A stretch of DNA of 64,000 nucleotides, from contig CM060732.1 in NCBI GenBank assembly GCA_030704615.1, positions 26,846,001 through 26,910,000 of the forward strand, written 5' to 3'. The DNA comes from Takakia lepidozioides (Eukaryota > Plantae > Bryophyta). Below, one piece after another: positions 4,976-40,138 of this stretch. Position 1 is the stretch's first letter. The number at the start of each line of letters is the position of its first letter. Below the pieces are notes generated by a model. The model searched no databases. It saw only the letters and a program-made list of their open reading frames with translations, and was not told where the DNA came from. The translations under genes and the position numbers were made by a program.

Positions 4976-5318
4976 CAGTGTTGGGCGGGTATATATGTTG
5001 ACATATATACCCGGACGGGTAATAATCAGGGTATCATACTATTGAGACCCGCCACCCAAATTTTTGGTGGACCCTGCTTGAGTTAGAACCGGAGAGGGCC
5101 ATCTCGCCAGTTACCCGGCCCAAGCGGGGGCCAACTTGGCTTACTATATGGAACCGGACTTTAACCTTGAAAATCAGCCGAGTAGTAACTTTTAGACAAG
5201 ACCTTGAGATTTTATTACAACCTAACTGCATTCATGGGTAGTAATTATGCAGCGCCACATGGGTTCCGCATTTAAGAGGACGGTTAGTCAAAGGCTTTTG
5301 GAAGGAAAACCCCCCTCA
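4976..5318 (+). mobile_element. hAT-like MITE, left part (cut by the inversion breakpoint)
   Basis: Terminus CAGTGTTGGGCGGGTAT preceded by the 8-mer GTTGAGAC (4968-4975). The identical terminus at 37051 is preceded by GTCTCAAC, its reverse complement. Confidence 0.8.
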
Positions 5319-7160
5319 GGATGCTCTTGAATGAATTGAGGGGCATCTGGCCGATATTCTGGATCTTGAATAGTGTGTGAAGAAGGTTCGTTGTCACATG
5401 GGCAGTTTCAGTTCTCCTGTCACATACAGTGGTGTGTCATCAGTGAGTGCTAAAAGCAAACAGACAGTGAAGGAAAAAATGCGGACAATAACAGGTGAAG
5501 AAGACACTTACTTGTTAACGTCATGCATTGCCGTCAACAGTGTTGTGATGTTTCCCTTGGGATCCAGCACCATTGAGGCCACAGAGTAGTGCCACTCCTC
5601 CTCGGTGCTATGATATCTCTCGATCATGTTCCTCCAGGCAAGCAATCGGTGGTTGCCATCCCACACATGAAACATCTTGCCAGAGAAAGGCTGGGTGACG
5701 AGCCTCTTGCAAATGATAGATTCGAACTCATCGTTTATCTGTCACCAGATAGGATCCCAGCCTCCAACATTGGACTCGTCCACCAACACCTCTCTGCCAG
5801 AGGAGTCTGCCAAGGACACGTAAAAAACAGATTGACCCTCTATGTACCCATGGCAAAAATCCTGTTCCAACTTTTGAATGTCGTTCGTCAAAACTGGTCG
5901 AACGAAGGGCATGGAGATCAAACGGCATAGGGGTATCATTATTTTTCCCCCAGGGATGCCCATGGCCTTGATGACTTGGGCAGAATTCACTTTGGAGAAG
6001 GAAAGCAGATCTTTCGCTCTGTCTTCGTATGGCCTGCCATCGTCCTCCTCCTCAACAACCACTAGTTCCTGCTCAATGACTTCGTCCTCTACCTGAGCAG
6101 CACCTTTCCTTTTCTTCGTCTGCACTCAAAACGAAAGGTTACGAATGTAAAAGACTTGTGAGAAAATGCGTGCTTCAACGCACGCAATTTTCCACCCTCT
6201 GAAAGGTACTCATTTCTTTTCCTACTTCATACCCAAAGTCAATCTACTCTCTTCCATAAAAGTATGCAGCAGACATTTAATCTAATCTCCCTGAATAGGC
6301 AGAAAGGTGAGTGTGAGAGAACCTCCAGAAACTGCGTGCGTTGACGCACGCAATTTCTGGGGGTTCTCTCACACTGACTTTTCTGCCTATTCAGGGATTT
6401 TGTCTTTGTTAACACAACACAACTGAGAGAAGGCCATACAGAGAACCTCCAGAAAAATGAGTGCGTCAACGCACGCAGTTTCTGGCGATTCTCTCGCACT
6501 CACTTTTTTGCCTATTCAGGGCTTTTTTGTCTCTGTTAACTCAGCACAGCTAAGAGAAGGTCATAGAGAGAACATTCAGAAATTGCGTGCATTGACGCAC
6601 TTATTTTCTTGAGGTTCTCTGAATGGCCTTCTCTCGGCTGTCGAACTCTAATCTCAGCTGTCCCTCCTCCTATGCAGTACATGGAAAGTGAGAAGTGGGT
6701 CATACCCGGGTTTGGTTGTTATGCATTGCTTGCATCCCTGTGGTCTTACTCTGAACGATCAAGCAAAAAAAAGCAGAATAGAGGGCAAGAAAATTGCGTG
6801 CGCCAACGCACGCAATTTTCATGCCCTCTATTCTTGACAGAAGATGGCAAGTAAGTGAATCATCTGAGGTCCTTTTGCCGAAGAACTCCCAGATGCCTTT
6901 GATGTGGCAACAACGGCAGCCTTCTTAACCTTCGGCGTCGCCTCCTCCTCCATGACGTTCTTACCCTTCGGCGTGGATTCCTTCGCAAGAGCGTCCGCCT
7001 CGTCTGTGTCCATAGCGTCTGTGTCGTCCTCTGATGCAGTCTCGTCCCCAACTTCATCACGAGTTGGCGGCTGGTCCTCCACCGCCATGTGTTCGGTTTC
7101 CAGGGTTGCGCTCTCCTCTGCGATCTCCTTCTGTGTCATGTTGAGCTTTTGGCCTTTCAT
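5315..7160 (-). pseudogene. 5' half (exons 1-3) of the transposon cargo gene, with a ParB/Srx-like N-terminal domain
   Basis: Exon 1 ~7160-6864 (acidic, low complexity; donor apparently mutated). Exon 2 6119-5512: IMIPLCRLISMPFVRPVLTNDIQKLEQDF...MFHVWDGNHRLLAW (DGNHR at 5646-5660; TGA at 5742). Exon 3 5416-5315: RTETAHVTTNLLHTLFKIQNIGQMPLNSFKSIL. Intron 2 is GT-AG and in phase. Confidence 0.75.
6163..6834. repeat. Cluster of five palindromes with core TGCGTGCG-N4-CGCACGCA in intron 1, partly within ~128-bp tandem units
   Basis: Copies at 6163-6191, 6288-6397 (53-bp stem, 4 mismatches), 6449-6486, 6578-6610 and 6775-6834 (28-bp stem, 1 mismatch). Confidence 0.9.
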
Positions 7161-7917
7161 TCTCTCTCTTGCCTTCTTCCTATCTCGCGCTAAAGTAAAA
7201 AAGAATGACTGTCTTCTATGCCTTCCACTCTCTCGCGCGAAACTCTGTCTCCTGCTACTCTCCAGCTTGAAAAACTATGATCTACTGGAATGAGAGACGT
7301 CGTGCGATGAGTAGCAGCGGGGCATCGCTCTCGGCGGTTATGCATGTATTCACTGCATATGTGTCCCCCTCCTAACGGCACACTCGTCCATTCTGCGGTG
7401 GCCACCGTCTTTCATTATGGAGGTATGGCCATCGCATGGATTTGATTCGGATGGATGACTAATTTCAGTAGATTTTTTGGATTCTCCCGGATGAACATCT
7501 TCCATTCGTTCGACGGCGATTCCTCTTAAACCCTGTACTCAATGCATGTCGGGTACCACGTGGCTGAACACATTGGGGTGGCATGGGATGTCGGTCTCTG
7601 CCGTCATTTCACATGTGACTGTAAAGGCACATAATTGCTTAACAACTGTTTTATGAACTGTTTTGACAACTATTTCTGAAAGGCTCTTTAACGGTATGTC
7701 AGCTTTAAAAACAGGTCTTGGCTGACCCTTCCAGAACGGTTTGGGACATACATGACATGTTGTCCTTTGCCGACCTCGTAGTAAAGGTGACGGACTTTTG
7801 GGTTTCGGTCTGAAATGCAAAGCATGAGAAATGTAATCCCCACTATCATTTGTAATAAGAATCTGCACAGAAGTTGTGGCTTCCGCACTTCTGCGAGGGA
7901 ATTTCTCTTGCAGCAAC

Positions 7918-9609
7918 ATGGCTTCCTCTAAAGCGGAGTTTTACTCTGTGGAGAAACCAGTACCTTTCTCGAAGGAGACCGATGACAATGGTTTTGCAAT
8001 TGCGGAGGAACATCTCCTAGCAACGCGTTTTGAGTTCCAGTATGGTACTGTGTGGCTGGAAAGAGAGGTTTACGGTGACGATGAGAAGTTGAAGAAGTAT
8101 GCTTTCCAGAAACCGGATGAAAACGCACTTATGAGTCAGTGGAGAGTTCCTCCAGGAAGATACAGAGTCCTTGGAGCTCCTCGACGGCAGTCGATTGGTT
8201 CGTATGTGACGCCGCGAACTGCTGCTTCTGTTGTTCAAGACAAGAGGAATGTGGTCGTGAAGACGGAGCCCACAACTTCCAGACTAATTGTTGAGCTCTC
8301 CGACTCCTCGGAGGAGGACGTCCCGAAAATTCCTTTTCTTGCTCCTTCTCCGGTGGTCGTGGTGCCGGAATTGAAGGACCTGTGTAGTGTCATTCCTAAA
8401 CTGAAGTCAATGGGAGGAATGCCCGGTTTCAAGAGTGAATTGCGGGGGATTGACTGGGACACTGTCCCTGTTGAGCGTGTGCAGTACCTTCCAGAATCTT
8501 TTGATGGGGATGTCGTCTTCGAGCTGCCTGCACCTGGGCGGGGTGGACCCGTTTTGAGCCTCATGCATGGAATGGACAAGAGACACGATGGACACCCATG
8601 GTGCAGAACGAAGACATCCAATATTCAAAATGATGACAAGCTCGTGTTCAGAAGAGCGGTGTGCAATGGGCACCTGAGGTGAATTTGAGTTGCAGACCCC
8701 TGCGGTCAGAGGTTCAGAACGAGAGCAAGTGGGAGGGTGTCACCAAGAATCCTTTCAAGCCCGGTGAAGCACCTCCAAGCTCCAACACTTTTGTTTGCAA
8801 GTTCTGCAAACGAGCATCTTCCTATGTGGCAGTGTGTGGAGCAAGAATGTACTATGTGGTGCACCGTTTTCCAACCTTGACTAGAGCCGGTGTGCATTTT
8901 GGGTTCCACAACCATCCAATGTCGAAGGGGAATTACAGGGAAAGCGTTGAAACAGTATCCAGGTTGATAAGACAAGAGTATGAGAGCAATCCAACAGCCA
9001 CCACCTCCACAATTGTTCTTGGAGCAAGCAAGACTTTCCTGGAAACCCATATTCTTAGTGAAGGAGATTATGTGGGCATGAAACTCGACGGGTCAGCCTT
9101 GGACAATGTTATGGATCACTTCTCTACCTTGAGCTCACCGAACATTAAAAACCAGGTGAATGCATTGAGGATGGGCTCTGCTAACAGAGGGTACGTTGAT
9201 AACATTTTCGAGTTGAAGCGACGGAGCAGGTATGACTACATTCAAGAGAGTGTGTTCCCAGGTCAAGGGTCGAATAAAGTGTACGTTTTCAAAATGTCCA
9301 CAGCCGGGGAGGGCAGTGGAGTCAGTCTTGTGAAGCGCATGCAGAAGGGTGGCGATCTTCGGAACTGTTTCCTTATGTTTGATCACGTCAAACGAGTGAA
9401 AGACTAGACTACAATGGCGTGTCATGTTTACGATCCTTTCTACCAGCGAGTCATGACAATTGCAGTGTGTGACATGCAATCAGAGGATGCGATTTGCAGC
9501 AGCTAATGTGGAGAAGTCTCATTCGCGTTATGGACTCCCAAGGTGTCCCATGTCCAAATTTTGCCGGATCTATGGCAGACAGTGCTCAAGCAAACTTCAA
9601 TGTTATTCG
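7918..9609 (+). pseudogene. Mutator-like (MULE) DDE transposase with a GCM/WRKY-type Zn domain, disrupted and truncated by a Gypsy insertion
   Basis: DGHPWCRTKTSN...RRAVCNGHLR / VCKFCK...CGARMYYV...GFHNHP (GCM-like). Then LMFDHVKRVKD*TTMACHVYD...IAVCDMQSED and, after a frameshift, QLMWRSL...PNFAGSMADSAQANFNVIRV (first two catalytic-Asp regions of a MULE domain). Stops at TGTTAGAGG (9610). Confidence 0.75.
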
Positions 9610-10210
9610 TGTTAGAGGACTGTCTGGGACTTAGGCACTTGTATGGGTTCTGTGGGGTCTGGGACTTAGACACTTTTATGGGTTCCAAGGGGTACCCTTA
9701 TTTTTTACATAGACTAGTCACAGCCCACACAGCCCGCACAGCCAATCACAGCCCGACACAGCTCGACACAGCCCGACACAGTCGCACAGCCAGTCACAGC
9801 CCGTCACAGTTTCACACAGTCAGTCACAGCTTGACACAGTTGTCACGACCATAGGGAATGGATAGCAGGACAGGGAACAACTGCGGGGAACAACATCTGC
9901 GAATGGAACATGTTAGTTCACGGATGACGGATAGTGAGGGAAACGGTTAGAACAACGGGTAGGAAGATAAAGCCAGTAGCGGGGACTGGAAAGGGATCAC
10001 TGTTTGGGGAATCTTGGGGGGACATCACAGAGGACGGACGGAGGGAGATGGGGAGAGAAGAGGAATGATGATGATACTACAGAGAGGAGGAGGAGACAAT
10101 TGCGACTTAGTTAGTAGAAGCTGTAGAATTACATAGAAAGGTAGATTAGAGAAACTGTGGCATCAACATGTATCTGATTATCATTAATATGATTCTTATC
10201 CAATACAAAC
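9610..10210 (+). repeat. Putative 5' LTR (3' boundary uncertain) containing a CACAGCC array at 9716-9850
   Basis: Starts TGTTAG; candidate ends ...AACA at 10168 or 10210. No canonical TGG-type PBS recognised. Confidence 0.5.
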
Positions 10211-10371: not shown

Positions 10372-11037
10372 ATGACTGATTGTTCTACGCGGGCTGAGTG
10401 CTTAGAGATATCCAACTCTTCTATCTTGGAATTTCCCCCTCGGATAGCGAAGGGATGGGTGAGTAAAAGTCGCGTGACATTTGGCGACCATACTGGGGAA
10501 CTGGGTAAAGAACAACCAGATGTGATAGGCATCTGGTGGGATCATGGCGGTTGGAGAATTAAAGAATTTGATGTGAATCAAATTCCCTGTGGAACAAAGA
10601 ATGAAAGATTGTCTAAACAATTCTTTCAGAGGTTCTTGGAATTGCCAGACGGTTGTAAAGAAAATATTCTTAAGAGAGTGCATGATGCTGACCCGGAATG
10701 GGGTCTGGAGAGAGGAGTGATAAAGATTTATCAGGTGGCCTGTAGAGGAAGAGCACGTTGGTTACCAACACTGGTTTATGTGATAGCCCTGCTATCCATT
10801 AAGCGAGTAGAGTTTGACAGCTGGGAGGAAAGAAAGGTGAATGTTTATACTCATATGCATGAGGAACTTGTACTGGTAAAGAACTGGATTCCAAATGATA
10901 TCTTGTGGATCAAACTCACACCAAGAACAACTTTTCAGACTTGTTTACCATATGGGTATATGGTAACGGAGACTTCTAGTATATCCAGAGGAACATTGAA
11001 GCTTGAGAGAAACCCACGCATATACGAGATACTATAG
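10372..11037 (+). CDS. Unknown 221-aa ORF upstream of gag (retrotransposon ORF0)
   Basis: Uninterrupted ATG-initiated ORF between LTR and gag, with globular-like composition and no recognised motif. Confidence 0.55.
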   Translation: MTDCSTRAECLEISNSSILEFPPRIAKGWVSKSRVTFGDHTGELGKEQPDVIGIWWDHGGWRIKEFDVNQIPCGTKNERLSKQFFQRFLELPDGCKENILKRVHDADPEWGLERGVIKIYQVACRGRARWLPTLVYVIALLSIKRVEFDSWEERKVNVYTHMHEELVLVKNWIPNDILWIKLTPRTTFQTCLPYGYMVTETSSISRGTLKLERNPRIYEIL

Positions 11038-11086
11038 AAGGGAGTTTTGGACATTGCCACATTAAAAGAAATGAAGGACATGGGAC

Positions 11087-13343
11087 ATGAGTGATGAAAG
11101 AGAAGCTAGACTCCAGAGATATTCAGCAAAAAGAGAAAGTTATTTGAAAGCTAATTATCCATACCTTTGGGAGAGAGGAATAGACATTGGGGAATCATCT
11201 GGACCTCTCACACCATTGAGATCAGGGAGTACATCACCCATGCCAGAAGAGTTAGAGTTGGATACTACACCTTCCTTTTCTTTGCAAGAAAGATTAAGGG
11301 ATTTGGCAGGGGAAGAAGATCAAACACGAGGTGAAAGATCTGAGGTGCATCCCTGGATAAAAGATTTAACAGAAATCTTTGATAAGAGTTGGCATGGAAC
11401 ACCAAGAGCAGGAACTCCAGTTTCTGAAACTGAAGAGGAGGTGGCAGAGCCAACGGAGAGTTCAAACTCTCCAACACTATTACAAAACAGTTACATGAGT
11501 GAAGAAGAAGAAGCCGAAGGGCAGAACTTGGAAGATGAAAACAGAGAGAAGAAATTGGAAGATGAGGAGTATGAAGAAGTAGACCCAGCAACTGAGGTTG
11601 AGACTACAACTAGGACATCCCAACCCGTTGGACCTGGATCAAGTGGAGCACTTGGATCACAGGCCAACGAAGGTGTCGGCTCAGAGGGATCAGGCGGAAG
11701 ACCTGGATCTGGCTCTGGGGGGACAGGGAGTGTGGAAAGTAGTGCAACTGAGGCTGGGAATACTGTGAATATAGTAAGGCCAGGAGCAGGAAGTGCTCAG
11801 GGGCCAGTACTTGGTGGAAGAACCACCACAACTACTAGAGGTCCTCGAGGACCAGTATCAACCAAAGGGCCAACACCTGCAGGAGGGCAGGGGGTAGGGC
11901 CACAGATGGCGTTACAACCAACACGGGCAAAACCACCTTTTCCAATATATTCAGGAAAAGGGGATCCTGATGTACACATTAGCCAATACAAGCACATGTG
12001 TATAGTGAACAATGAGAATGGCGATGATGCCAAGATGAGACTGTTTCCGTGTTCACTTATAAAGAAAGCCAGTGAATGGTATGCAAGATTCCCTGATAAT
12101 CATTTCCTAACCTGGAATGGCTTGAGTATAGCGATCCGAAATAGGTTCAGGACCAGTAAAACTGAGGATGAAGTGTATGGAAGTTTACAACAGTTGAAGC
12201 AAAAGAAGCATGAAACTGTTGAAGAGTATATGGAGAAGATAGAGCTGATGATGAAAAAGCTGGCAGCTGTACCAGCACCAGGGCTACAGAAGGCTTGGTT
12301 TGTGAATGGACTAAGACCAGAGCTGCAAAAGAAAGTGGACATGTTACCCCACAATACAGTGGAGGAGGCATTTGAAACAGCAAACAGAATTGAGCAATTG
12401 GGAATGCTCAGGAGAGAGAAAAGAGATGAAGAAGACTCAGAGGATGAGTCAGATGAGGAAGAAGAATTGGAATAGAAGAGGAAGAGTAAAAAGAAGGAAA
12501 AGTTGAAGAGAGAAAATTATGAGAAAAGATTAGAAGAAATCTTGAAAAAATATGTGTAAAGGCCACACCACCACTGAATGCCACATGAAGGAGAAACACT
12601 GCACTATCTGTAAAATGGATAACCATTCTACTGAGAATTGTTACTACAACAGAAGGATAGCAGCAAGAGAACCTAGACAAGTAAGGGTGCATCAAGTGCA
12701 GCCCCAGCCAAGAAGAAACAATGATCAGGACTACTATGGTAGGCCCGGTGGTTATAACAATGGCATGGAAAGGAGAGGTAATCCAAGAGGGAATTACCAA
12801 GGAAATCCCAGAGGCAACTATCAGGGTAATTATAGGGGAAATTACCAGCCAGGGAATCAGGATTACAGAAATAATCCCAGAACAAACCAAGGGCGAGGAC
12901 CTAATGGAGAAGAACTGTGTTACTATTGTAATCAGGCAGGACATCGCAAGGCGGCTTGTCCATTCTGGATCAGACATCAAAATGAGATGAGAGCTCCTGT
13001 GAATGAGGGGCCAGTAGTGGCAGCCCACATGGTTAGGCCATGTGTTGTACCAGAAGTAAGTACAATGATAGTAACCAGAAGCAAAGCCAAATTAATACCT
13101 CCAGTGGAAGAGGAAGTGGATGATAATGAAGATGGCAGTGATGTGCCTAAAGATGATGAGGCTTGGGGAGATGAGAAAGAACTGCATAAAGAAGTGGCGG
13201 ATACCATAAGGGAAATGCAGAAGAGTACTGATATTCCTATGGCAGATTCCTCAGACTCTGAAAAGAAGAAGAAGTCAGTGAGGAAGAAGGAAAGAAGGAA
13301 GCTGCAGAAGTGCAGGGTAGGGAAGGGACTTTGGCTGAAGTGA
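11087..13343 (+). pseudogene. Gag (retrotrans_gag core plus CCHC zinc knuckles), broken by stop/frameshifts near 12475-12550
   Basis: FPIYSGKGDPDVHI...LFPCSLIKKASEWY...LKQKKHETVEEY...FVNGLRPEL; CTICKMDNHSTENC and CYYCNQAGHRKAAC knuckles. Confidence 0.9.
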
Positions 13344-16300
13344 TATGCCAGTCCAAAGTGGAAATTACCATTGGACAGCTATTGGCTGTGGCACCTTATT
13401 GTAGACACAGGCTGTACCAAGCAATCAATAGGATTGTCCATGTGACAGAGAATACAGGCCTGAACAACAAGGTGACCAGTTATAATGTGAAGCCAGAAGG
13501 GCAAGAAGCGGTCATGGACTTTGATGATTCTATGCCAGTAATCCAATTGAGAATTGGAAGCACAGAGATAACTGATGTTCTGATAGATGGAGGCTCTGGA
13601 GTGAATATCATGACAGACCAATTGAGACAGAAGCTTGGTCTAAATAACATGAAACCAGCCCCATTTACAGTAACAATGGCAGATCAAAGGAGTGTTCAGC
13701 CATTGGGATTGATAAGAGGAGTTAGGATACAGATTCAAAAGATGATCTTTAAGATCACAGTAACTGTACTAAAAATGGATGAAGTCATGGAAGCTTATTC
13801 CTTATTGCTGGGTCGACCATGGCTGAAACAGGCCAGGGTATCCCATGACTGGAATTCACAGTTACTAACTGTGCAGGATGGGTTGCACAAGATACAAATC
13901 ACCACTCAGAAATCTAAAAGACTATCGGCTACAAGAAGACCAAGAGGAGTCAGAGAGTATGATTGGAAAGAAGGACTGGATGAGGAGCAGGAAGCTACTT
14001 TGTTCGCTGTACACCCAGAGTGGGAGCAGGTTGCAGAGATGCAATTGGAAGGCCTCAGTTATTTTAAAAATATCTGTTGTGGAGTAGTGACAGCAACACC
14101 AATGGAGGGGGAACCGAGCAGTTACCCACCACATTTCTATGAAGAAAAAGAGGGAGAGATGGAAATCCTAGAGGAACCAGCCACTATAAGTTTACAGGAT
14201 GAAGTAGTGACTGGTTGTACAATCACAGCTGATGAGCAAGTGAGAGAAGTAAATGTGGGAACTGAGGAGAAACCAAGCATGGTGAAGGTAGAGGCGGATT
14301 TGGAGCCAGAATTCTTTGAGGAAGCTAAGAGTCTGTTCATCAAATACAGAGATGTATTTGCTTGGAGCTATGAGGATCTGAAAGGGATACCACCTGAGAT
14401 CTGTCAACATAAAATTGAACTGGAACCAGGTTCAGTACCAATCAAACAAGCAAGATACAGAATGAATCCCAACTATGCACAGAAGGTTGGAGAAGAGATC
14501 AAAAAGTTGGCGGAGGCTAAGTTTATATACCCGATAGAGTATACGACTTGGTTGTCACCCATTGTGATAGTTCCTAAGAAGAATGGGAAACTAAGAGTTT
14601 GTGTGAACTACAAGAAGCTGAATGCTTGTACGAAGAAAGATCCTTTCCCTTTACCATTCACAGAAGCAGTATTGGACACTGTGGCAGGCCATGAGATGTA
14701 CTCATTCATGGATGGCTTCAGTGGATATAATCTAGTGCAAGTGGCAGAAGAAGACCAAGGAAAAAGAGCTTTCATCACAGACTGGGGTGCTTATGCATAC
14801 AAAGTCATGCCTTTTGGACTTTGTAATGCACCAGCAACTTTTCAGAGAGTGATAAGTGAATCCTTTCAGGAGTATCTGGATGACTTCATGCAGGTGTTCT
14901 TGGATGATTTCAGTGTGTACAGCTCTAAAAGTGAGCACTTGCATAAATTAGAGTTATGTTTGGCCAGATGTAGGATGAGAGGTCTGGGCCTGAATCCAGA
15001 GAAGTGTACTTTCTGTGTGAACTCTGGGGTGCTGTTGGGACACATTGTGTGCAAGAAGGGACTTCTTGTGGATCCCAGAAAGATAGAGGCCATTAAAGCC
15101 TCTCCACCCCCAGTAAATGCTAAGAGTCTAAGGAGATTCCTGGGACAAACCAGCTATTACGGAAGATTTGTCAGACGGTATGCACAGATAGCAGCACCAT
15201 TGAGCAAACTTCTGAAGAAAGATGCAGTGTTTGCATGGACACCTGAATGTCAACAGGCTTTTGAGGAACTTACATTGTCAGTAACAACTACACCTGTGCT
15301 GATTAATCCTCGCTGGCAGGAAATATTTCATGTTCACTGTGATGCTTCAGGAGAAGCACTGGGAGCAGTGTTAGCCCAAAATGTTACAGGAAGGATAGAT
15401 TCACCTGTGTACTATGCTAGCCGATTGATGAACAATGCTGAAAGAAATTATAGCACAACAGAAAGAGAAGCATTGGCAATGATCTATGCAGTGAAGAAAT
15501 TCAGGCATTACCTGTTGGGCAAGAAGTTTATGTTCTATGTGGATCACCAGACTCTGATATACCTGGTAAACAAACCTCTGATAAGCGGAAGAATAGCAAG
15601 ATGGTTGATAATCTTGCACGAGTTTGAGTTCGAGGTTGTTTACAAGCCTGGGAGGCTGCATCTTGTGGCGGATCACTTGTCACGGTTATCAACAGGAGAA
15701 CCAGCCATGGGAGTAGATGATCAATTACCAGATGCGAGTCTATTTGCAGTGGAGGTGCAGGGAAGTGCAGATGACTGGTTAGATTGGCAGTGGCCAATTA
15801 GATACTACCTTGCTCATGGTCAGTGCCCACCAAGTTATGGAAAGGAGCTAAGAAAGAGAATTGCTATCAAGGCTCTACCTTACACTATGGTAGGGAGCAG
15901 AATGTATAAGCTAGGACCAGATGGAGTGATGAAGCGATGCTTATACCACCATGAAGTTAATAAAGTTTTGGAGGAAGTTCATAAAGGAGTGGCAGGAGGT
16001 CATTTTGGAGAAGAGACTACCAGTAGGAAGATACTACTTGCCGGTTACTGGTGGCCTACTTTGTTCAAGGATGTACACGAGTATTGTAAAACTTGTGATG
16101 AGTATCAGAGGCTAGGACCATTGCAAAGATTTGGAAAGATGGCTTTGCATCCTACAATGCCTACTGAACCATTTCAGAAATGGGGACTGGATTTTGTTGG
16201 ACCAATAAACCCACCAGCCAAGAATACACATAACAAGTATATAATCACGGCCACTGATTATACTACGAAGTGGGTGGAAGCTACAGCTCTGAGGGACAAC

Positions 16301-17191
16301 ACAGCTAAGTCCACAGCCAGGTTCCTGTATGAGAACATACTTACAAGATTTGGCTGTCCCCTGGAATTTATCAGTGACCAAGGAAGTCACTTCATCAATG
16401 AGACTATAGAACTTTTGACTAAGGAGTTCATGATTGTGCATAAGAAGAGCACAATCTATTACCCACAAGGTAATGGACAGGCAGAGGCTACCAACAAAAT
16501 ACTATGTACTATCTTGGCTAAGATAGTCAATGTGAACAGAACAGATTGGGATACAAAGTTGTTGACAACTTTGTGGTCATACAAGACTTCATATAAAGTC
16601 ACCACTAAGTATACACCATTCCAATTAGTTTATGGTATGGAAGCTTTACTTCCAGTGGAGTTTTTGTTACCTACCATGAGAACTGAATGGGGAAGAAGAA
16701 TGGAATTGGAAGATTCAATTAAGGTCAGGAAACATGAATTATACCATGTGGAAGACGTACGAGCTGATGCAGTTGACAACATGACCGGAATTCAGAGGAA
16801 AAGGAAGGATCAGTTTGATGAAGGGAAGTTGAAGACTTTTAAAACATGAGATTTGGTTTTGTGGTTACAAAAGAAGGGAAAGATTAAAGCTTCTAAGCTT
16901 AAATTGCCATGGAAGGGACCTTATGTCATACAAAAGATGTATGATAACAACACGGCCATGTTACAAACCATTAACAAAGAGATGCTGGGGAGAGTCAATG
17001 CCAACAAGTTGAAAGGATACAGTGGTATCCATGACAAACCATTGAGGCACGATTTGCATATAGAAACACAGGAACAGTCAGGGGCTACCCCAGTAATACC
17101 AACGGAACACGAAGTACTTGTTGTAACACCAATTGTGTATGGTCTGAGCAAAGAACACAGGTGTTTGAACATCTATCACAGTCCAACATAG
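13310..17191 (+). pseudogene. Pol: aspartic protease, RT, RNase H, integrase (stop at 16847 before the GPY motif)
   Basis: VLIDGGSG; MPFGLCNAPATFQR and FLDD; HCDASG...ERNYSTTEREALA; H-H-C zinc region, WGLDFVGP, SDQGSHF, GQAEATNK; WKGPY. Confidence 0.95.
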
Positions 17192-17390
17192 GATCACACA
17201 GCCTATCACAGCCCAACACAGGGTCACACAGCCTATCACAGCCCAACACAGGGTCACACAGCCTATCACAGCTCAACACAGGGTCTCACAGCCTATCACA
17301 GCCAGCACAGTGTCACACAGTCGCACACAGCCTAACACAGTGTGACACAGCCTGTCACAGTCTAACACAGCCTACCAGAATTACACAGTC
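17174..17390. repeat. CACAGCC-core tandem array with a 30-bp higher-order unit (ctatcacagcccaacacagggtcacacagc x~4)
   Basis: Directly visible between the integrase end and the 3' ORF. Confidence 0.9.
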
Positions 17391-17868
17391 CATAAGAACA
17401 GTGACAGGTGGACGCAGGATAACTTCAGGGAAATGGCCGGCGGAAGAAAGGACGGAAACCAGTTTAGAAATGGACACGTGGAAGTCAGGGCGCGACACAC
17501 AGCTGAGAAGGAAGTGCAAGAACAGGTGTCATCAAGAAAGAGGACAAGAGTGGCCGTCAAAGTACCTACTTAGCACGTCAATTCGGATGAATGGCGGGCC
17601 CATTAATGAATACGGAAAAACGGTAACGGAACAAACGGCAAGTACAAAAAAGCAAAATTCTTGTCACATGTGTTATCCTAGTGGACAGTCCAGCAGGGAA
17701 AGTCCACTAAAGAAAATTAAATCTAAAATCCAGTCACAGCGGTTACAGCCAATCATAAGCCAGAAGCAGGATCAAGAAATTGGAGGGATTTTAAGCGCAA
17801 AAGTCGGCGTCGTTCCAAGTAACGGGCGTCTCGACGGGACAGACCATCAATGCTATAGCTTTGAAGCT

Positions 17869-18813
17869 ATGGAGGAACTAACAGACTATACGCTCGCAAT
17901 ATTACTTACGCAGTGGCATAGGGACGGAAGAACAGAGCGTATCTTCTCTCTTAATCGTTGCTTGCAAGCCCCACAGGCTTACAAGAAATTACCCATAGCA
18001 TTTTGTAACAACCATACGTTTATGCTTTGTGCCCTGCAGGCATTTCTTCAATTGTTACAGCCAAAACCTTTCTGTGGGTCTACAATGAAGAGAGTGAGAG
18101 GAATGGAAGAAATCAGGGTGAAGAGCACCACAATCCTGCAGAAACAAACGATTGCTACTCCACAGGCGGTACAGTTACTGAAGGAGCTGCGATTAGAAGG
18201 ATTGCAAAGCAAAGATTGGACATTGCACCATAGGCAGTACATGTTACAATTCTTGCAGAACTTTGAGCCTATGACAGGAGCAACAACGGTGAAGGAAGTT
18301 GAATTAGAAGTTACTCCCCTATACCTACAGCAATTGTTTGAATTGCCATCAGGTCAGGTGCATGTGGAGGAGCACAGGGCAAGACTGCAAATAGGGGACT
18401 TATTCCAAGAAGGGAGTTTCTTTAAAACTCAGGGTTATGCTTGTACCAAGGCCGTGTACCCAGGGCTAAGGGAGGTAGGCCAGATACTGAACGTTGTGTT
18501 TGCCATGAAACAGAACCAACAGTACTTGAGCAGATCCTTCACAGAGGAAATACTCAAAGCCCTGAGAGGAGAAGAGGTAGCATGGGCGGATATAATGTAC
18601 AACGGACTGGTAGAGGAGATGAAGAGATTACAAGGCACTGCCGCAAAGTCTCCTATCATAGTGTCTGGGCTAATCATTGCACAAATTATTCTAGACTCGT
18701 GCATACTTGATGCGAGAGAAAGGAAGGAGATGAGAGTGTTTGAGACAGCAACCACTGCCATAGAAGAGCAAGGTTCTTCACAGGGTGAAGGGGGATTGGC
18801 ATCAACAGCCTAA
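17869..18813 (+). CDS. Extra sense ORF downstream of pol, resembling plant retrotransposon accessory proteins (Transposase_32/PMD-like)
   Basis: MLQFLQNFEP...TTVKEVELEVTPLYLQQLFELPSG and LRGEEVAWADIMYNGL resemble the 'VREFYAN...VRG..I..TP..I...L.LP' and 'G..INWA' patterns. The frame continues, broken, to ~19110. Confidence 0.55.
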   Translation: MEELTDYTLAILLTQWHRDGRTERIFSLNRCLQAPQAYKKLPIAFCNNHTFMLCALQAFLQLLQPKPFCGSTMKRVRGMEEIRVKSTTILQKQTIATPQAVQLLKELRLEGLQSKDWTLHHRQYMLQFLQNFEPMTGATTVKEVELEVTPLYLQQLFELPSGQVHVEEHRARLQIGDLFQEGSFFKTQGYACTKAVYPGLREVGQILNVVFAMKQNQQYLSRSFTEEILKALRGEEVAWADIMYNGLVEEMKRLQGTAAKSPIIVSGLIIAQIILDSCILDARERKEMRVFETATTAIEEQGSSQGEGGLASTA

Positions 18814-19109
18814 GAGGCAGAGGAAAGGGATCACATTAGAAGCATAACCATTGGCTACGAGACAGACAGAGGAAGAAGTTACTCATACTCTTGTGCAAGA
18901 GGGGGCACAGCAGCACAGAGAAATGTGGGTACAGACAACGCAACCTGTGGAGAGAGACAGGAGGCTTCAGTATCACAGCCATCATAGCCAGATGATCGGC
19001 TTGTCACAGAGTTACCACAAATTGTCCATGCAGTTCCACCACAAATAATTGATTTGGAGAAAGAAGGGTTAGATATCCCCACTACAGAACAGGTGGTGGC
19101 AGAAATTGA

Positions 19110-21030
19110 AAAGGGGGACCTTCATCAAAGCTGGAATTGTGCCAAATGTCAATCTGAACACTGCCCTGGCAGCTTTGGAAAAGGGGAAAGAGGTCCATGG
19201 CGTCATCTTCAGAGCTGGAATTGTATCAGATGTCATTATGAACAATACCCTAGTGAACATGTTTGCAAAATGTGGGTGCATCTAGGATGCAAAGGGAGTG
19301 TTTGACACTATGGCTGAACGAGATGTGGTGTCGTGGAGTGCGATGCTTGCAGGGTATGCACGGCAGGGATGTGGGATGGAGGCTTTGGAGAGCTATGAGC
19401 AGATGATGGGGGAAGCACATCATGTTTGTGTGCATTTGCAATGTGCGTGCAAGCCTGGCAGCCCTGGAGAAGGGCAAGAGGTGCATAGGGATATCATCAA
19501 AGCTGGAATTGTGCCAAATGTCAATCGAACACTGATGGCGACATCTTCAGAGCTGGAATTGTACCAAATGTCATTCTGAACCATACCGTGGTGGACATGT
19601 TTGCAAAATGTGGGTGCAAAGGGATCTAGGATCTAGGATGCAAAGGGAGTGTTCGACACTATGGCTGAACGAGATGTGGTGACGTGGAGTGCGATGCTTG
19701 CAAGGTATGCACGGCAGGGACGTGGGATGGATGCTTTGGAGAGCTATGAGCAAAGGATGGGGGAAACACATCATGTTTGTGTGCATTTGCAATGTGCGTG
19801 CAAGCTTGGCAGCCCTGGAGAAGGGCAAGAGGTGCATGGGGATATCATCAAAGCTGGAATTGTGCCAAATGTCAATTTGAACACTGCCCTAGCAGCTTTG
19901 GAAAAGGGGAAAGAGGTCCATGGCGACATCTTTAGAGTTGGAATTGTACCCTGGTGAACATGTTTGCAAAATGTGGGTGCATCTAGGATGCAAAGGGAGC
20001 GTTCGACACTATGGCTGAAAAGAGATGTGGTGTCGTGGAGTGCAATGCTTGCAGGGTATGCACGGCAGGGACGTGGGATGGAGGCTTTGGAGAGCTATGA
20101 GCAAATGATGGGGGAAGCACATCATGTTTGTGTGCATTCGCAATGCTTGTGCAAGCCTGACAGCCGACCTGGAGAAGGGCAAGAGGTGCATGGGGATATC
20201 ATCAAAGCTGGAATTGTGCCAAATGTCAATTTGAACACTGCCTTGGCAGCTTAGGGGAAAGAGGTGCATGGCGACATCTTCAGAGTTATTATTGTACTAG
20301 ATGTCATTATGAACAAAACCCTGGTGAACATGTTTGCAAAATGTGGGTGCATCTAGGATGCAAAGGGAGTGTTCGACACTATGGCTGAATGACATGTGGT
20401 GTCGTGGAGTGCGATGCTCGCATGGTATGCACGGCAGGGACGTGGGATGGAGGCTTTGGAGAGCTATGAGCAAATGATGGGGGAAGCACATCATGTTTGT
20501 GTGCATTTGCAATGCTTGTGCAAGCCTGGCAGGCGGCCTGGAGAAGGGCAAAGAGGTGCATGGGGATATCATCAAAGCTGGAATGTACCAAATGTGAATC
20601 TGAACACTGCCCTGGCAGCTCTGGAAAAGGGGAAAGAGGTCCATGGCGACATCTTCAGAGCTGGAATTGTACCAAATGTCAGTCTGAACCATACCCTGGT
20701 GGACATGTATGCAAAATGAAGGGCAAGAGGTGCATGGGGATATCATCAAAGCTGGAATTGTGCCAAATGTCAATCTAAACACTGCCCTGGCAGCTTAGGG
20801 GAAAGAGGTCCATGGTGACATCTTCAGAGTTGGAATTGTACCAGATGTCATCCTGAACAAAACCCTGGTGAACATGTTTGCAAAATGTGGGTGCATCTAG
20901 GATGCAAAGGGAGTGTTCGATACTATGGCTGAACGAGATGTGGTGTCGTGGAGTGCGATGCTTGCATGGTATGCACGGCAGGGACGTGGGATGGAGGCTT
21001 TGGAGAGCTATGAGCAAATGATGGGGGAAG
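19110..21030 (+). pseudogene. Tandemly amplified PLS-class PPR pseudogene array (~5 units of ~350 bp)
   Basis: Repeated VFDTMAERDVVSWSAMLAGYARQG.GMEALESYEQM / LAALEKGKEVHGDIIKAGIVPNV.LN.ALV.MYAKCG starting at ~19298, 19649, 20001, 20369 and 20913, with many frameshifts. Confidence 0.9.
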
Positions 21031-21063
21031 GGGGGGCACCTTCTTCAATAGCACAATGGCTAC

Positions 21064-21290
21064 GAGTGGGTAGATGGTCAACTGGAAATAGCAATGGCAG
21101 CAACGCAATTGATAGAACAAGGCCCACTGCTAATGAAGGTACCTTCTTCAACATATTTCACCCTGAATTCCCCTGCTATCAGAGTTGTCCCTAAGTACCC
21201 AAAAACAGGTAACAGATATGAGAAGAAGCTGTGGGATGAATACTTTTCTGACCGCAGTAACGGGTGGGACAACCGAGGCAAAAAGGTGAA
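21064..21290 (+). pseudogene. PPR-associated module ending in half of an OSB-type PDF motif (copy 1)
   Basis: KLWDEYFSDRSNGWDNRGKK at 21226-21285; homologous to 22283-22600 and 59350-59525. Confidence 0.6.
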
Positions 21291-21329
21291 TGCCTGTCAG
21301 ATTACAGAGTGTAGCAGATGCAATTGACC

Positions 21330-21640
21330 ATAGGAACTAGTGTGATAAGTTGAGTTGGGTGCAATTGCACTCTCCCTTTCCTCTCTGCTTCTGTTTGCTA
21401 TTCAAAGGTAGGATTCCTGCCCTTAGTTTAAATTTCAGTCTGGTGCCGAGAGTGGGTAGACCCTTGAGGTCATCCATGATGTCCTCCCCCATGTCACAGA
21501 CTGGAAACAAGTCCAGGGAAGTTTTCTGCCTAACTTCATTTTCATCAGACAATTTTCTGGAAACGGACATGGCTTTGGACACTACAGCCTCTAAGTCAGT
21601 AGGGTTGGGGCATTTGCTAGAACAATTCTAAAAGGTGTTT
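21330..21640 (-). mobile_element. Non-LTR retrotransposon ORF2 C-terminal fragment
   Basis: KTSLDLF...LGTRLKFKLRAGILPLN...CNC resembles the post-RT zinc-finger region of LINE ORF2. Confidence 0.55.
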
Positions 21641-21644
21641 GTCA

Positions 21645-27070: not shown

Positions 27071-28814
27071 ATCTCATAGATCAGATAGACCAGGTAGACA
27101 GACCAGGTAGTTTTATCGTGTTGGCGTAGCTGTATTCTATAAACGCACCACTCCTTTACACCTGCTAATATTTTTTAGTCTCGTTTTGAAAACATATAAC
27201 TTCTATCACCGAGGTTTTAAAAACATAAAACTCCCATGACCGTCAGTTGTGCTCACGCCGTGCTTACGTGAGCATGCAAACGATACCAACCCCCATGGAT
27301 CTACAAGAGGTCAAAATATGTGATGTCAGCCTCTAGTAGGAACCGCCGGACATGAAGAGCTGAGATAACCGCCATTGTTTGAGAACAGGTTCTTTTGTAA
27401 TTTTTTTTGTGTTTGATCTGATCCAAAACTAGTGGCCCAAAGAGGCAGGTATTTAACCTTTTTATCTGACATTTAGAGCCAAAGGTTATAATCCAGATAG
27501 TAACATGTTATTTGGTTCACTCATAGAGACAAGTATAAATCTCCGGTTATTCATGCGAGATCATCAACAAGCCAAGTTTTCTATGGAAGAAATAAACCTA
27601 CCCAAATTCAAAAATGTAATATACTAAAAATGCTTTAAAATGAAACGAAGAGAGGATGACCTACCAACCAGAGCTCCCATCCAAGTAACAACATCCACCC
27701 TACACACCCCTATTGCGATCCACTTCAAAATATACTCAACCGCCCAGAGGCCATCTAGACATAAACTCCTTTTGGTCATAACCAGTGTTGGTCTGGTATC
27801 TTGAATTGGAAATACCAGAAGGGTCCTAGTATGCACTGCTGAATTTTTTTAAGGCAGGTAGGTTTTCCAATAATGCAGCCCTTGAGTTTTTCAAGTATGA
27901 ATCTGGTATGCATAGAGTGGTTTAAAGAAAAAAATCAATCCAGATATGAGCAATGGTATCTGAATGTTAATAACCTAGAAATAAGATGTCGGATATGGTA
28001 TTAAAAAAGTAATAAAATAAAAATGGTACTAGTATTCAAATTCAAAAAAGAAAGAAAAAAGAATTCAAATTCAATATTGAAATGGCCATCTGAACAGTTC
28101 AAATGGCCATTTGAATATTCAAGAAAACCACAAGGGAAACGTGCTCATCTCATAGGATACCAACCCCCATATTAACATGATACCCGAACAGACCTGCAGC
28201 GACGAGTCGAGCTCTAGTAGGGGCTGGGGAAGGAGAACCATAACCGGCATGTGAGGGTTTGGGGGACAGCCAGGGAACTCGATAACCTTATGGTAGGGTA
28301 CTACAAATGTTTACGGGAACAGAGAACAATAGGTTAGGTTAGGAGAGACCCGGGTTGATACTCGGCGAAACCCAGATATCAGACCAACAGTGGTCATAAC
28401 CGCATAGGCTTAACCATTATATTTGTTATCAACTGGCAGGATATTAAAAACAAGAAAGCTCTAAAATCCCGGAACGGACGGATCTCAACACTAAGTTAAA
28501 GTTAAACAATCGTAACCGGCTGATATGGAAAAATCAAATATCCATGCAACACTGGCCATGATATGGATGTGAACTTTGCCATTATTTTAGTAATGTGACA
28601 TTTTTTAAATGGTTTTATTGTTAATAATTTTTTTTTCAATAATTTATATAATTTAGGAAGTTATCTCCTTAAAACAAATATATGTTCCCAATGAGTTTCA
28701 TAGGACCAACCCATGCCATAAGGTTAAGGACCACTCGCCAAGTTGATGCGTAGTCCTTGGCTACCTTGAAAGGGCAGACAAAGGTTTACCACCAACTTTG
28801 TATGGGTAATCTAA

Positions 28815-35560: not shown

Positions 35561-35566
35561 ATTGAA

Positions 35567-36138: not shown

Positions 36139-36785
36139 TATAATGAAATTCAAAGGGATTTTTTCCCCTGCAATAATTCAAAGAAAGCTTTAACGGGCTT
36201 CCTCCCCTTTCTCAAAAAGAAAAAGAAAAACGGATAGTAATGAGAAATGAAAATGATTCAGCATTTCTCATTACTATCCCTTTTTCTTTTTGGGGTTGTT
36301 TGTGCTCATTCCCTATGGGCAAGATAACATTATGATCCAACTCTATAAGACTCCCTAAATAACCTCATCAAAAAAGGTATCTTGGTACAATGGATGCTAT
36401 TTATGCGTATCTATTTTTTCGAGATATCCTTTTTGAAAATATTAGACCTACTATAGTCGGTCATCCATAATGGGATGACCGGTTAGAGCCGGTCATCCAA
36501 GTGTGTGGCCGAAGCGTTATAAATATGTAGGATTCAAAATACACATATACGCCGAAAATTCATTATGACCCAACCTTGTATACACACACTTTAGGTTAGA
36601 TATTAATGGCGTTTCATCTTGCATCATCCATGTCCAATGGCGATTGATAATGATACATGCTTGTTTTCATCCAACTTAAAAGCCATCATCCTTAAACATT
36701 AATCATCATGTTTAATGTGTGTAGAACATGTTTAATGCGTCCAAGACCAATTAAACGAAGCCCAGGCCTACTAACTCTCACTATA

Positions 36786-37042
36786 TAATCGGCCCTCCAT
36801 ATGGGAGTAAGAAAAACTATAACACTTAAAGGATTGTAACACTTTAACAGATACAAATTTAGGATCAATGAAAAATAACATTTATAAAGTTCACTCTTAC
36901 ATGGGGAGCCCTAAAAAAAGTTTACGTTAATAGAACCACAAGAAGGGAAAAGAACTACGAGAAGGGAAAAATCGCCATCACGGCTGATGATCTACAGGTA
37001 GTGAAGGTTGGAAGAAAGATTCTATACATGTCTGATGTGAAT
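36786..37042 (-). mobile_element. Right part of the pogo-like element begun at 4602 (inverted)
   Basis: Terminus at 36786-36802 is in direct orientation to 4602-4618. The rejoined junction can read MLRHSHQTCIESFF, like a pogo C-terminal QxxIxxFF motif. Confidence 0.55.
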
Positions 37043-37050
37043 GTCTCAAC

Positions 37051-37410
37051 CAGTGTTGGGCGGGTATGACAATTTGGGCATATTGAAGGGTCCGGGTAAG
37101 GCATCTGTGCTTAAAACGGTGTGGAGGTGGTTATATATAATGTAGGGGTTTGGAAATTGTGGCGGTTAGAGGTTATCAATAGAGGGGTCCCCAAAAAAAA
37201 TTTCTCTGGTTATCAATATGCCATTATCCAAGTGGAACACCGCCGGGTCCATACAACGGTTATCAATATAAACTGATTTTCAGTTATGATACATTAAGAT
37301 TTTGAAAGAAAGAAAAAAACAAAGGGAAAAAAATGAAATATGAAGAATCACAATAAAGTAATAATAACAATAATAATAAGTGGACCAGATTTGGTTCCAA
37401 AAAAATAAAT

Positions 37411-37484
<74 letters not shown>

Positions 37485-37492
37485 ATTGCTTA
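37051..37492 (-). mobile_element. Right part of the hAT-like MITE begun at 4976 (inverted)
   Basis: CAGTGTTGGGCGGGTAT at 37051, with the reverse-complemented 8-bp TSD at 37043-37050. Confidence 0.8.
37415..37482. repeat. (TA)34 microsatellite
   Basis: Perfect TA run ending 10 bp before the right inversion breakpoint. Confidence 0.98.
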
Positions 37493-40138
37493 TGAGCTTT
37501 GAAGGTTTTGAGTCATTCAAGAAATGTTTGACATCGAAAACGTCAGATACCTGGTACAAGCTGATGAGGGAAGCATTCATGGAGTACATGTACACTGTAT
37601 GTATTCCATCGCTCTGGCCTTCCATTGTCTGTTGGGATATTGTCAATAACAAGTGATCTCATTCCGGATTACGTTTTGCAGCAAGAAATAGCTGAAGCTG
37701 GAGAGAGAGAGGAAAAGCGGAGTACTATTTGAAAACCCCGGAGGGTCTGAGGACGTCCAAGGGAGTGGCGGAAGCCATGAAGTTTACGATGAATGAGATA
37801 CGGAAGAAGCTCATGAGCGCTTTCGTGAAACAGTTGAGAATAGCTGACCCTGATTTTGGTCCCGAGTTTCTTAACCAGGTGAGGATCCACTGGAACAATA
37901 ACACCAAACCGGAGATGACACAGGAAAAGCTTCACCGGCTGTCAACTGTAGCTGTGGAAGCTGACCAGAAAGTGAAATGGTTGGAGATTTGGAATTCCGA
38001 CCCAACTGTCAAGGATACATACTGCTTCCCTAGGGGTGAAAGAGATGAGAACACCGGGCACATCAAACCCTTCAGCGACCAAGTTCTTGATATATGGTTG
38101 CATAGAGCCACCTACTGGAGCCAGGTACTTTTCAGGACTTTCTGTGCTTGAAATTTTTGAGAATATCTTCCCATGAATGGACTCTAACCCATGCATATAT
38201 ATACCTGCAGATTGAAGCTCGTGCAAACAAAGTGCTGGAGAAACAGCTTTATGACTACAAAATTACCATGACCGTGGCCGAGGACACTCTGGAGGATTAC
38301 TTGAGGCAGTGGAAGGCCACAACTTGGAGCAACTGCTTCTTCAGAGAGTTTTCCCGAGATGGAGGAATCTCCCGAACAAATGATTTTGAGTAGCAGTACG
38401 GGGCGGAGGGAGCCATGAAGAGGGTCCTATACAGGTTCGTTAATTTTGTCTTATGTTTGAAAACATTCTTTGGCAATCAGTAGACAGGCAGTTTGTGGCC
38501 ATAAAAAACTGCGTGCGCCAACGCACGCAATTTCAGAGGGCCACAAACTCAGATGTGCTCTCTCCTCCATCATGGATTTCAATGTTCCGTTGGCAGTTTT
38601 GAATGGAATATCTGTCTGCCGAAAAGGGGATAACTTTCTGCATATGGAACCTTTGTTTTCTCCTGTTCTTGCATATGGTACTTGTGAGTGTATTTCGGTT
38701 GCCTCATGCTCAAGGATTTGTGCACCCCAAACTATGTGCGTCGACGCACGCATTTTGGGAGGGCCGCACTATATGTTTTTTTGCCTTCAATGTCTAAAAG
38801 TGCACCTCTTTTGTTTTGTAGGTATATCAAGAATGTGCTCATTCCAGGAAAAAACCTCAGTAAGTACCCTGCCTTTATCGACTTGTGGTCTGACCCCTCT
38901 AACAGTCAGACCATGTACATGGCAACCATCCTTAGAGACTACGGGAGATATCACCTGAAAGACTTCTGCTGGTATCTCGACATTCCGAAATCAGATTGCC
39001 CCTGGTATGAGTTGCAGACACGAAACCAGAACGACAATGCGGAGTCTTTGGCCCCTCTTACTGACAAGGAATTGCATGAGAGGAATCTGCGAAACCTCGC
39101 TGAGAAGGAACCCGCAGCCAACAAAACTCCTGCGAGAGGGAAGGGAAATGGAAAGGGTACAAAGGACAAAGGGAAGGAGAAGGCCACCCAAGGGGAGACT
39201 GCGGGGGGTGAGGTAGCGCAGACCCCAATTGCAAACAAGGAACGAAAACGTAAGGGGAGGATTGAGCCATACGACGTAGTGGAGCACCCATCCAGAATCC
39301 AGCGAGAATGTAAATGCGAGATTGTTAATGATTCAATCCTTGCCATGATGGAAAGCAGAAAATCTGGTTACACTGGAGAACCCTCTCAAACTTGGGGCAA
39401 GCTGTGTGCATTCCTTGACTCGGTAAGCCAATTCCCACTGTTTGTCTCCTTTACTGTTTTCCCTTTTGGATAGTTATTTAATTTTTTCCGTCTGTTTGTT
39501 TTCAGGTTTCGAAAGGGCAGTGTTGGGTCAATGGTTCTCTGAAACCATGTTGTGTCGACATGGTGATTGTGGACATTCCGGATGGGTTGCCAGTACCGGA
39601 CATCCTACCCACAGGCACTTGCCCAACATGAAATGCATTTGATGAGAGGTACTGGCGGTGGGTCTTTTCATTTTGCAATTTTTTTTTATCGGATGCAGGG
39701 GTTCTTATAATGATCCAATTGGTCAATACGAAATGTCGCCGGGAGCAGGAAGGTATAGTGCATGTGGAAATCAACGAAGGGGACAACAAAGTCTTGGACG
39801 ACGATTTTGCATGTGAGTAAGTTGTTTTTCTGTAAGCATCCGATTTCTCCCGCGAAAATGGCCCCCCCTTTCCCATTAATGGTGGCTAATGCAATTGTGG
39901 TTCTTTTGGTGGCAGGATATTAGAAGCTATTCCTTTGGTCGACGTCTCTGTTATTTACAGTGACTTCTGGTGCAGCCCTCCACGTTCATACATCCTACCC
40001 GACTACGCGGAGGCCATTGCTCGTCAACAGAGTTTCATGTTATCTCCCCCATGTGCTCGAAAGCACAACAGGCACCTCGGAGCTCGGGTTTACGTCGATG
40101 ATACTGCACAAATTTCAAGGGATAATTCTAGTGACTGA
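37493..40138 (+). pseudogene. 3' half (exon 3 remainder to exon 8) of the transposon cargo gene; C-terminal N6/N4 DNA-methyltransferase-like region
   Basis: Exons ~37493-37596, 37682-38124, 38211-38434, 38822-39422, 39506-~39812 and 39917-40138, with GT-AG introns. CEIVNDSILAMM...LKPCCVDMVIVDIPDG...(W>stop)NAFDERYWRWVFSFCNFFLSDAGVLIM. Frameshift at ~37710; stops at 38391 and 39629. Confidence 0.7.

Follow-up and report, generated by a model that had tools for sequence, protein, structure and literature searches.

A hAT-type element in two separated halves

The window, that is, the whole stretch of 64,000 nt from a Takakia lepidozioides chromosome analysed here, holds at two distant places the parts of a single transposable element. 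The 17-bp terminus CAGTGTTGGGCGGGTAT is found at 4976-4992 and again at 37051-37067, both times on the plus strand, and allowing up to two mismatches it has three matches, against 0.01 expected by chance. The 8-mers that precede the two termini, GTTGAGAC (4968-4975) and GTCTCAAC (37043-37050), are exact reverse complements, which for a named pair would occur by chance with a probability of 1.5e-5. Both positions, as well as the inverted target-site duplication, had been put forward in an earlier sequence-only reading of this DNA, and both were recovered. When the interval 5319-37492 is flipped in silico, the left 343 bp (4976-5318, plus strand) and the right 442 bp (37051-37492, now inverted, minus strand) join into one 785-bp non-autonomous element of the hAT type, with inverted ends agreeing at 17 of 17 positions and a direct GTTGAGAC on each side; the 8-bp duplication around the inverted ends is present only after this flip. 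The two halves are complementary parts of the element, with differing internal sequence.

An intact sibling of 610 bp lies within the inverted segment (27783-28392, plus strand), with inverted ends of the same kind, the normal layout and a direct 8-bp GTCATAAC on both flanks, and it served as a positive control. Both duplications, GTTGAGAC and GTCATAAC, have T as their second and A as their seventh base, in agreement with the hAT target pattern nTnnnnAn (PMC10368747). The 17-bp inverted ends beginning with CAG and the 8-bp duplications are like those of Hermes-type non-autonomous hAT elements (PMC10368747), but no transposase or autonomous partner was identified here, and the window holds one sibling with related ends. 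Only the end regions of the sibling and the split element align, the interiors sharing 45% identity, which is the random level, and the sibling is therefore uninformative on the bases at the internal junction of the split element. A second copy of the 785-bp element was not found by blastn in the window and 42 moss-derived loci (350 kb), nor did a metagenome pattern scan for its restored middle, with 0-8 free bases so that either version of the junction would match, return anything.

The hAT-type element appears to have inserted into a putative outer element with terminal inverted repeats (TIRs), of which the left arm would be 4602-4975 (plus strand) and the right arm 36786-37050 (now inverted, minus strand). 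Its end regions, 4615-4649 and 36783-36821, align in direct orientation with a best local score that only 1-2% of controls, shuffled or random, attain. Both candidate ends do show TA, which in such TA-rich surroundings is not diagnostic, and blastn against the window and the 42 moss-derived loci gave no second copy. Of the pogo-like termini proposed in the sequence-only reading, a weak similarity of directly oriented ends is retained, and the pogo label, for which no unambiguous TA duplication and no further copies were seen, is doubtful.

The divided exon and its gene

At the same two points a coding exon is interrupted. Its reading frame is open on the minus strand from 5436 down to 5319, with similarity to homologues beginning at 5397, and resumes on the plus strand at 37493-37653, where 37493-37596 is the downstream part of the split exon. 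In the window as assembled the match to the homologue P0001 is divided between the minus strand at 5.3 kb (residues 1-32 at 5397-5290) and the plus strand at 37.5 kb, whereas P0001 aligns as one stretch over the restored junction. Two proteins from databases span this junction unbroken, as do 12 metagenome loci of moss origin (representing about five distinct sequences), so that the cut exon continuing in frame on the other strand, first noticed from its open frame, now has stronger support in the homologues aligned across the join. The exons were searched one by one. An ORF just right of the junction (37495-37653) gave no homologous protein candidate in a collection that apparently does not contain the ORFs of this genome. 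At this point the window carries three residues more than most homologues; two metagenome loci, L024 and L025, have an even longer loop there, starting ISFD, and the additional residues therefore look like an indel-prone loop and not like filler.

The remainder of the gene follows the same pattern. Its upstream coding pieces (5511-6125, minus strand) contain a VWDGNHR motif and an in-frame stop at 5742-5744, and in 23 metagenome loci homologous pieces precede the junction exon on its own strand, every copy of the motif-bearing piece there having stop codons. On the other side, the next conserved piece (37729-38148, plus strand, 140 aa) has 134 relatives in the representative library, the best with 52% identity, and remnants of the C-terminal part (39419-40093, plus strand) match residues 386-497 and 691-737 of the Ceratodon protein P0045. 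At the 23 metagenome loci the gene pieces stand in the order A-B-C-D, on one strand and within about 1.3 kb, whereas in the window they are divided between the two strands, with 32 kb in between.

Head to head with the broken gene lie two overlapping ORFs of a transposase-like partner gene (7876-9407, plus strand), which have no Pfam match and whose homologues in four loci (L021, L024, L025 and L039) are upstream of the gene on the opposite strand. The order of pieces conserved in the 23 loci and the head-to-head partner are both those of the second gene of bryophyte Mutator-like transposons, of which the broken gene is a decayed copy. The name ParB-like plus methyltransferase-like given to this second gene is based on motif resemblance. 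No Pfam family, those of ParB/Srx and DNA methyltransferase domains included, was detected up to an E-value of 1 for the window pieces, or of 0.01 for the proteins P0045, P0155 and P0028; comparison of the gene pieces and their Ceratodon relatives with solved structures gave no meaningful match, and Kelch matches of the same sequences were dismissed as noise. A comparison of the 40-47 kb region with the inverted segment revealed no matching Mutator ends. Fragments of transposons are frequent in the region.

The inversion and competing explanations

Two cut points in the chromosome delimit an inverted segment of 32,174 bp (5319-37492), and a single in-silico flip of it rebuilds the 785-bp element with its TIRs, the direct GTTGAGAC duplication and the continuous exon, just as the sequence-only reading, which had reconstructed an inversion of ~32.2 kb from broken elements, predicted for this check. 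The reciprocal junctions restore two continuous ancestral sequences, the exon to the codon and the element to its ends and duplication, its inner junction being a prediction; a few bases may have been gained or lost there, since no further copy of the element was found. Both the rearranged structure and the direction of the change, from the restored order to the present one, are thereby demonstrated, and a simple two-break chromosomal inversion, real and with the restored order ancestral, is very probably the correct account.

The sequence of events that we propose would begin with the insertion of the TIR element at about 4602, into which the 785-bp hAT-type element would then have entered, creating the 8-bp GTTGAGAC duplication. 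One of two breaks probably fell inside the hAT-type element, where a perfect (AT)34.5 tract of 69 bp (37414-37482) ends 10 bp away, and the other about 32 kb off in the exon of the decayed Mutator-like second gene, within the loop formed by a small, imperfect palindrome whose hairpin is modestly better than those of shuffles (z = -2.2). The segment would then have been put back in the opposite orientation through non-homologous end joining, with no residue lost at the exon. Within 500 bp on either side of the breakpoints inverted homology extends to 13 bp at most, the best match having one mismatch and lying off the breakpoints. The absence of long inverted repeats at the breakpoints excludes homologous recombination and makes joining of two broken ends the likely route. 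AT-rich repeats that form hairpins have been described as break sites, with both cut-and-paste and staggered modes of breakage (PMC7584159), and hairpin-forming DNA may have contributed to the breaks here.

An error of the assembler or scaffolder that flipped a 32-kb block would produce the same arrangement, and one junction does lie 10 bp from the AT dinucleotide tract, which is difficult to sequence. Nevertheless, the window contains no N, hence no scaffold gap, junction 1 lies in unique sequence, neither junction offers a repeat at which an assembler could switch, and both joins are reciprocal to the base with a common 4-bp overlap, all of which make such an artefact improbable. It could also be supposed, given the many transposon fragments nearby, that two independent, truncated and opposite copies of a composite element happen to lie beside two unrelated gene fragments. 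This very unlikely reading is effectively refuted by the exact complementarity of the 343-bp and 442-bp fragments with their different internal sequences, by the one 8-bp duplication that they share and by adjoining gene fragments that complement each other to the codon. Ectopic homologous recombination between inverted repeats and alternative transposition both produce inversions in plants, and either, the latter as aberrant hAT or Mutator transposition, might be invoked on that ground. Recombination would call for flanking inverted repeats of hundreds of bp, and none is present; alternative transposition is contradicted by breaks that are situated not at transposon ends but 343 bp into the element and within the exon, and by the lack of a new 8-bp or 9-bp duplication at the junctions. 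The repeat search and the junction sequences thus effectively refute both routes, to which we attach the least credence of all.

The junction 4-mer and the repair route

For the two-break inversion, the question that follows is how the ends were joined. Junction 1 reads CTCA (5315-5318) and junction 2 TGAG (37493-37496), and the breakpoints can be placed no more finely than these four bases: the ambiguity is exactly 4 bp, and among random pairs of breakpoints in this window 1.7% reach at least 4 bp. The inverted microhomology that the sequence-only reading placed here is thus present. On that reading the element already had its CTCA and the exon its TGAG before the event, and both were used in microhomology-mediated joining, an account favoured by the rarity of such ambiguity and by the exon's TGAG, which is ancestral according to both reading frame and homologues, the junction-spanning L codon and the following SFE matching. 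When two clean breaks on one chromatid are joined through microhomology, however, the 4-mer is lost at one or both junctions; annealing would keep it at one junction only. Here neither junction has lost its copy, and the 4-mer is retained at both as a 4-bp inverted duplicate. Pre-existing microhomology would accordingly require either that each site was cut with a cohesive 4-nt stagger or that two chromatids took part, and no other copy of the element in the window, the moss-derived loci or the metagenome scan was found to show CTCA within it. We regard this version of the inversion as doubtful. Of what had been claimed about repair, joining of two breaks without homologous recombination is retained, whereas the microhomology-mediated route is not established because both junctions keep the 4-mer, an atypical footprint.

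A 4-mer kept twice could result from cohesive ends of 4 nt, from precise blunt joining in which the 4-bp ambiguity is a matter of chance, or from the filling-in of a 4-nt staggered break in the exon. As a rough estimate, the origin of the 4-mer lies, with close to an even chance, in a 4-nt staggered break that was filled in at the exon site; the joining of cohesive or annealed ends through a 4-mer that both sites already had is a plausible though less favoured source, and mere chance is rather unlikely. These origins predict different ancestors. Under fill-in the element never had CTCA, its ancestral form would run from AAAACCCCC directly into TAAGCAATCC (CCCCC, then TAAGC), and the restored junction predicted by the sequence-only reading would be 4 bp too long; if the microhomology pre-existed, intact copies of the element would read CCCCCCTCA followed by TAAGC. 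It is also conceivable, although scarcely likely, that an enzyme made the exchange, either by 4-nt staggered cuts at CTCA and TGAG in opposite orientation with the cohesive ends swapped without loss of a base, a swap for which type II topoisomerases offer a parallel in their old subunit-exchange model, or through a structure-specific nuclease that cut a hairpin loop at each site.

The derived arrangement has the duplicate at each of its ends, a feature shared with staggered-break inversions, as is the setting of the breaks, of which one adjoins a long, AT-rich tract that is self-complementary and the other falls within a small palindrome. In the Drosophila cases, however, the duplicates measure tens of bp to kilobases; the present one, at 4 bp, could be distinguished from pre-existing microhomology only with the ancestral sequence. 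Inversions in the literature have likewise been polarised by means of interrupted transposons, for example the human HsInv0379, which arose by cut-and-paste end joining (PMC4591017). As in that case, there are two breaks, no flanking inverted repeats and a disrupted gene, and the ancestral order is read from transposon copies that end abruptly at the breakpoints (PMC4591017). The two differ in that HsInv0379 shows no microhomology, whereas a 4-bp inverted repeat is found at the junctions here, and in that the gene broken here was an already decayed transposon gene.

The rearrangement is an ordinary one of low novelty, and leaves knowledge of inversions unchanged. It provides a base-resolved natural example of an inversion, probably by end joining, in a bryophyte genome, with an ancestral state legible from the sequence alone, and, with both breaks at or beside hairpin-forming DNA, one more data point on the origin of plant inversions. 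A stop codon and a frameshift were present in the gene beforehand, so its breakage is not expected to have affected the plant. One assembly was analysed, and the inversion may be private to the sequenced line; it could be used as a marker, with PCR across the junctions to type accessions.

The split hAT-type element and its intact relative

A scan of the window places exact copies of the 17-mer CAGTGTTGGGCGGGTAT at 4976 and 37051, both on the plus strand, and the 8-mers preceding them (GTTGAGAC and GTCTCAAC, respectively) are exact reverse complements, which bears out the two observations that the sequence-only reading had made there. Since the sequences following the two termini are unlike each other, we regard these as the two distinct ends of a single asymmetric element rather than one end present twice. 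When the segment 5319-37492 (32,174 bp) was turned back by script, a 785-bp element (343 + 442 bp) was restored, with inverted ends identical at 17/17 positions and a direct GTTGAGAC on either side, in agreement with the element of about 785 bp with TIRs and a direct TSD that had been predicted. No further copies of the split element were found in the window, in 42 metagenome loci (see below), or in the metagenome scan.

A relative of CAGTGTTGGGCGGGTAT with two mismatches is found at 27783 (0.01 such matches expected by chance), where an intact 610-bp hAT-type element lies inside the inverted segment (27783-28392) and serves as a positive control. Its ends are CAGTGTTGGTCTGGTAT and, at the far end, an inverted version with two mismatches, and it is flanked by the direct 8-bp duplication GTCATAAC (27775-27782 and 28393-28400). 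The end regions of this sibling and the split element align, whereas their interiors do not. With T in second place and A in seventh, each of the two duplications fits nTnnnnAn, the hAT target pattern reported for Hermes; the split element thus has 17-bp ends and an nTnnnnAn duplication in common with Hermes (PMC10368747). From the sibling layout, and from both duplications fitting this pattern, the normal layout of such elements here is therefore inverted ends with a direct 8-bp duplication. In the Takakia genome, the split element departs from this layout.

The split element had also been described as enclosed by a "pogo-like" element with ends in direct orientation. These ends are weaker evidence: the best alignment in direct orientation (4615-4649 with 36783-36821) has a score reached by 1-2% of controls, no second copy of this outer element was found, and the TA at its ends is embedded in sequence rich in TA. 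The putative outer element agrees with the inversion but contributes little.

The broken gene and its restored exon

The broken gene starts on the minus strand with two coding pieces of 127 and 77 aa (6125 to 5511), parted by an in-frame stop at 5742-5744, the second of which has a VWDGNHR motif. The upstream part of the split exon has an open frame from 5436 to 5319 (-), which, once flipped, runs on unbroken into 37493-37653 (+), followed downstream by a conserved 140-aa piece (37729-38148) and by remnants to about 40.1 kb. Residues 1-252 of the homologous database protein P0001 (283 aa) align to the flipped sequence in one stretch, junction included, whereas in the unflipped window the match breaks up, with residues 1-32 at 5397-5290 (-) and residues 30-252 at 37510-38130 (+). 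The open frame and the homologues spanning the restored junction confirm the earlier proposal of a cargo-gene exon that is cut and continues in frame on the opposite strand. Besides the stop codon, there is a frame change relative to P0001 between about 37690 and 37730, and the window copy is decayed.

The exons were searched separately. The pieces gave no Pfam matches, ParB-like or methyltransferase-like domains received no support from Pfam or solved-structure searches of the pieces and their relatives, and a word search of the protein collection returned no close relatives of the junction ORF. Among 1.84 billion representatives, 134 are related to the 140-aa piece (best 52% identical), including two Ceratodon purpureus proteins.

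When a small alignment was run against JGI metagenome contigs, 42 loci, evidently moss DNA, were recovered. The junction is crossed in one aligned stretch by 12 of them, about five distinct sequences, and in 23 a single strand carries the pieces as A, B, (C), D, all inside about 1.3 kb. Four loci have relatives of the window ORFs at 7876-9407 upstream of the gene on the opposite strand, a head-to-head layout identical to that of the window, where a 125-bp tandem unit (6289-6590, 2.2 copies, 68-nt inverted arms, 90% complementary) sits between the gene and its partner. In L011 (6313-6862), a related gene copy from another moss carries a small inversion that places the second half of the 140-aa piece on the opposite strand, immediately following the first, and this is seen in three contigs from three samples (L011, L013, and L015). 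The motif-bearing piece B contains stop codons in every metagenome copy (L001, L004, L011, L012, L017, L028, L034, L035, L038, L039, L041, and L042), many coinciding with W of relatives, as expected from the heavy G-to-A or C-to-T decay of silenced transposons.

Over the ten residues to the right of the junction, most homologues are three residues shorter than the window. Because the junction-spanning L codon stays within L, I or V among homologues, and the loop of L024 and L025 is longer and starts with ISFD (LSFE in the window), we read the extra residues as probably an indel-prone loop rather than repair filler, leaving a small insertion during repair as a slight possibility.

Breakpoints and the origin of the inverted order

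Reading the ancestral order from transposons that end abruptly at breakpoints is standard practice (PMC4591017). An assembly error would be an unlikely source of the inverted order: a scaffolding flip should leave gaps and the window has none (N count 0), an assembler switch requires repeats at the joins, which are absent, and an exactly reciprocal pair of joins, as observed here, is not a product of such errors. Homologous recombination is ruled out, since no inverted match longer than 13 bp was found within 500 bp of the breakpoints, and the 13-bp match lies away from them, and so is aberrant transposition, because the breaks fall inside the element and inside the exon, not at transposon ends. 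What is well supported is an end-joining inversion of a bryophyte genome at base resolution, a further case of a known type, and the sole point of interest beyond a routine inversion is a small question, the origin of 4 bp.

The two junctions share a 4-bp ambiguity, CTCA/TGAG; among random breakpoint pairs, 1.7% reach this length. If a single chromatid had suffered two clean breaks that were then annealed at a microhomology, the 4-mer would have been retained at one junction only. Here both junctions retain it, and the footprint therefore differs from that of usual microhomology-mediated joining. Thus, of the mechanism put forward in the sequence-only reading, the ambiguity and the dismissal of homologous recombination stand, but the usual footprint is absent. 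The explanations that remain are a break at the exon site with a 4-nt stagger that was then filled in, in which case the element never held CTCA (the isochromatid staggered-break model reviewed in PMC7584159); 4-nt cohesive ends at both break sites; and precise blunt joining with a chance 4-bp ambiguity. The reading frame and homologues show the TGAG of the exon to be ancestral, and the CTCA of the element may be so. A perfect (AT)34.5 tract lies 10 bp from one break, and the other, in the ancestral order, falls within an imperfect 13-bp hairpin (z = -2.2 vs shuffles), in its 7-nt loop; a Drosophila inversion has its breaks at AT-rich hairpin-forming repeats (PMC7584159).

Other features of the window

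A Ty3/gypsy retrotransposon with gag, protease, reverse transcriptase, RNase H, and integrase domains is found inside the inverted segment (10372-18813, +), and a further 550-aa ORF at 17161-18810 has no Pfam match. Arrays of the 10-bp unit CACAGCCNNN occur at 1368-1819, 9719-9850, and 17173-17391, all on the same strand, two flanking the gypsy element and one outside the inverted segment. An ORF at 47723-48535 (-) weakly matches an S-locus glycoprotein domain (E 2.9e-5). Two PPR-type repeat arrays (motifs such as NTLVNMFAKCG), at 19100-22100 (+) and 57500-60500 (-), are 71-89% alike, and, although opposed in orientation, they would share one strand in the restored order.
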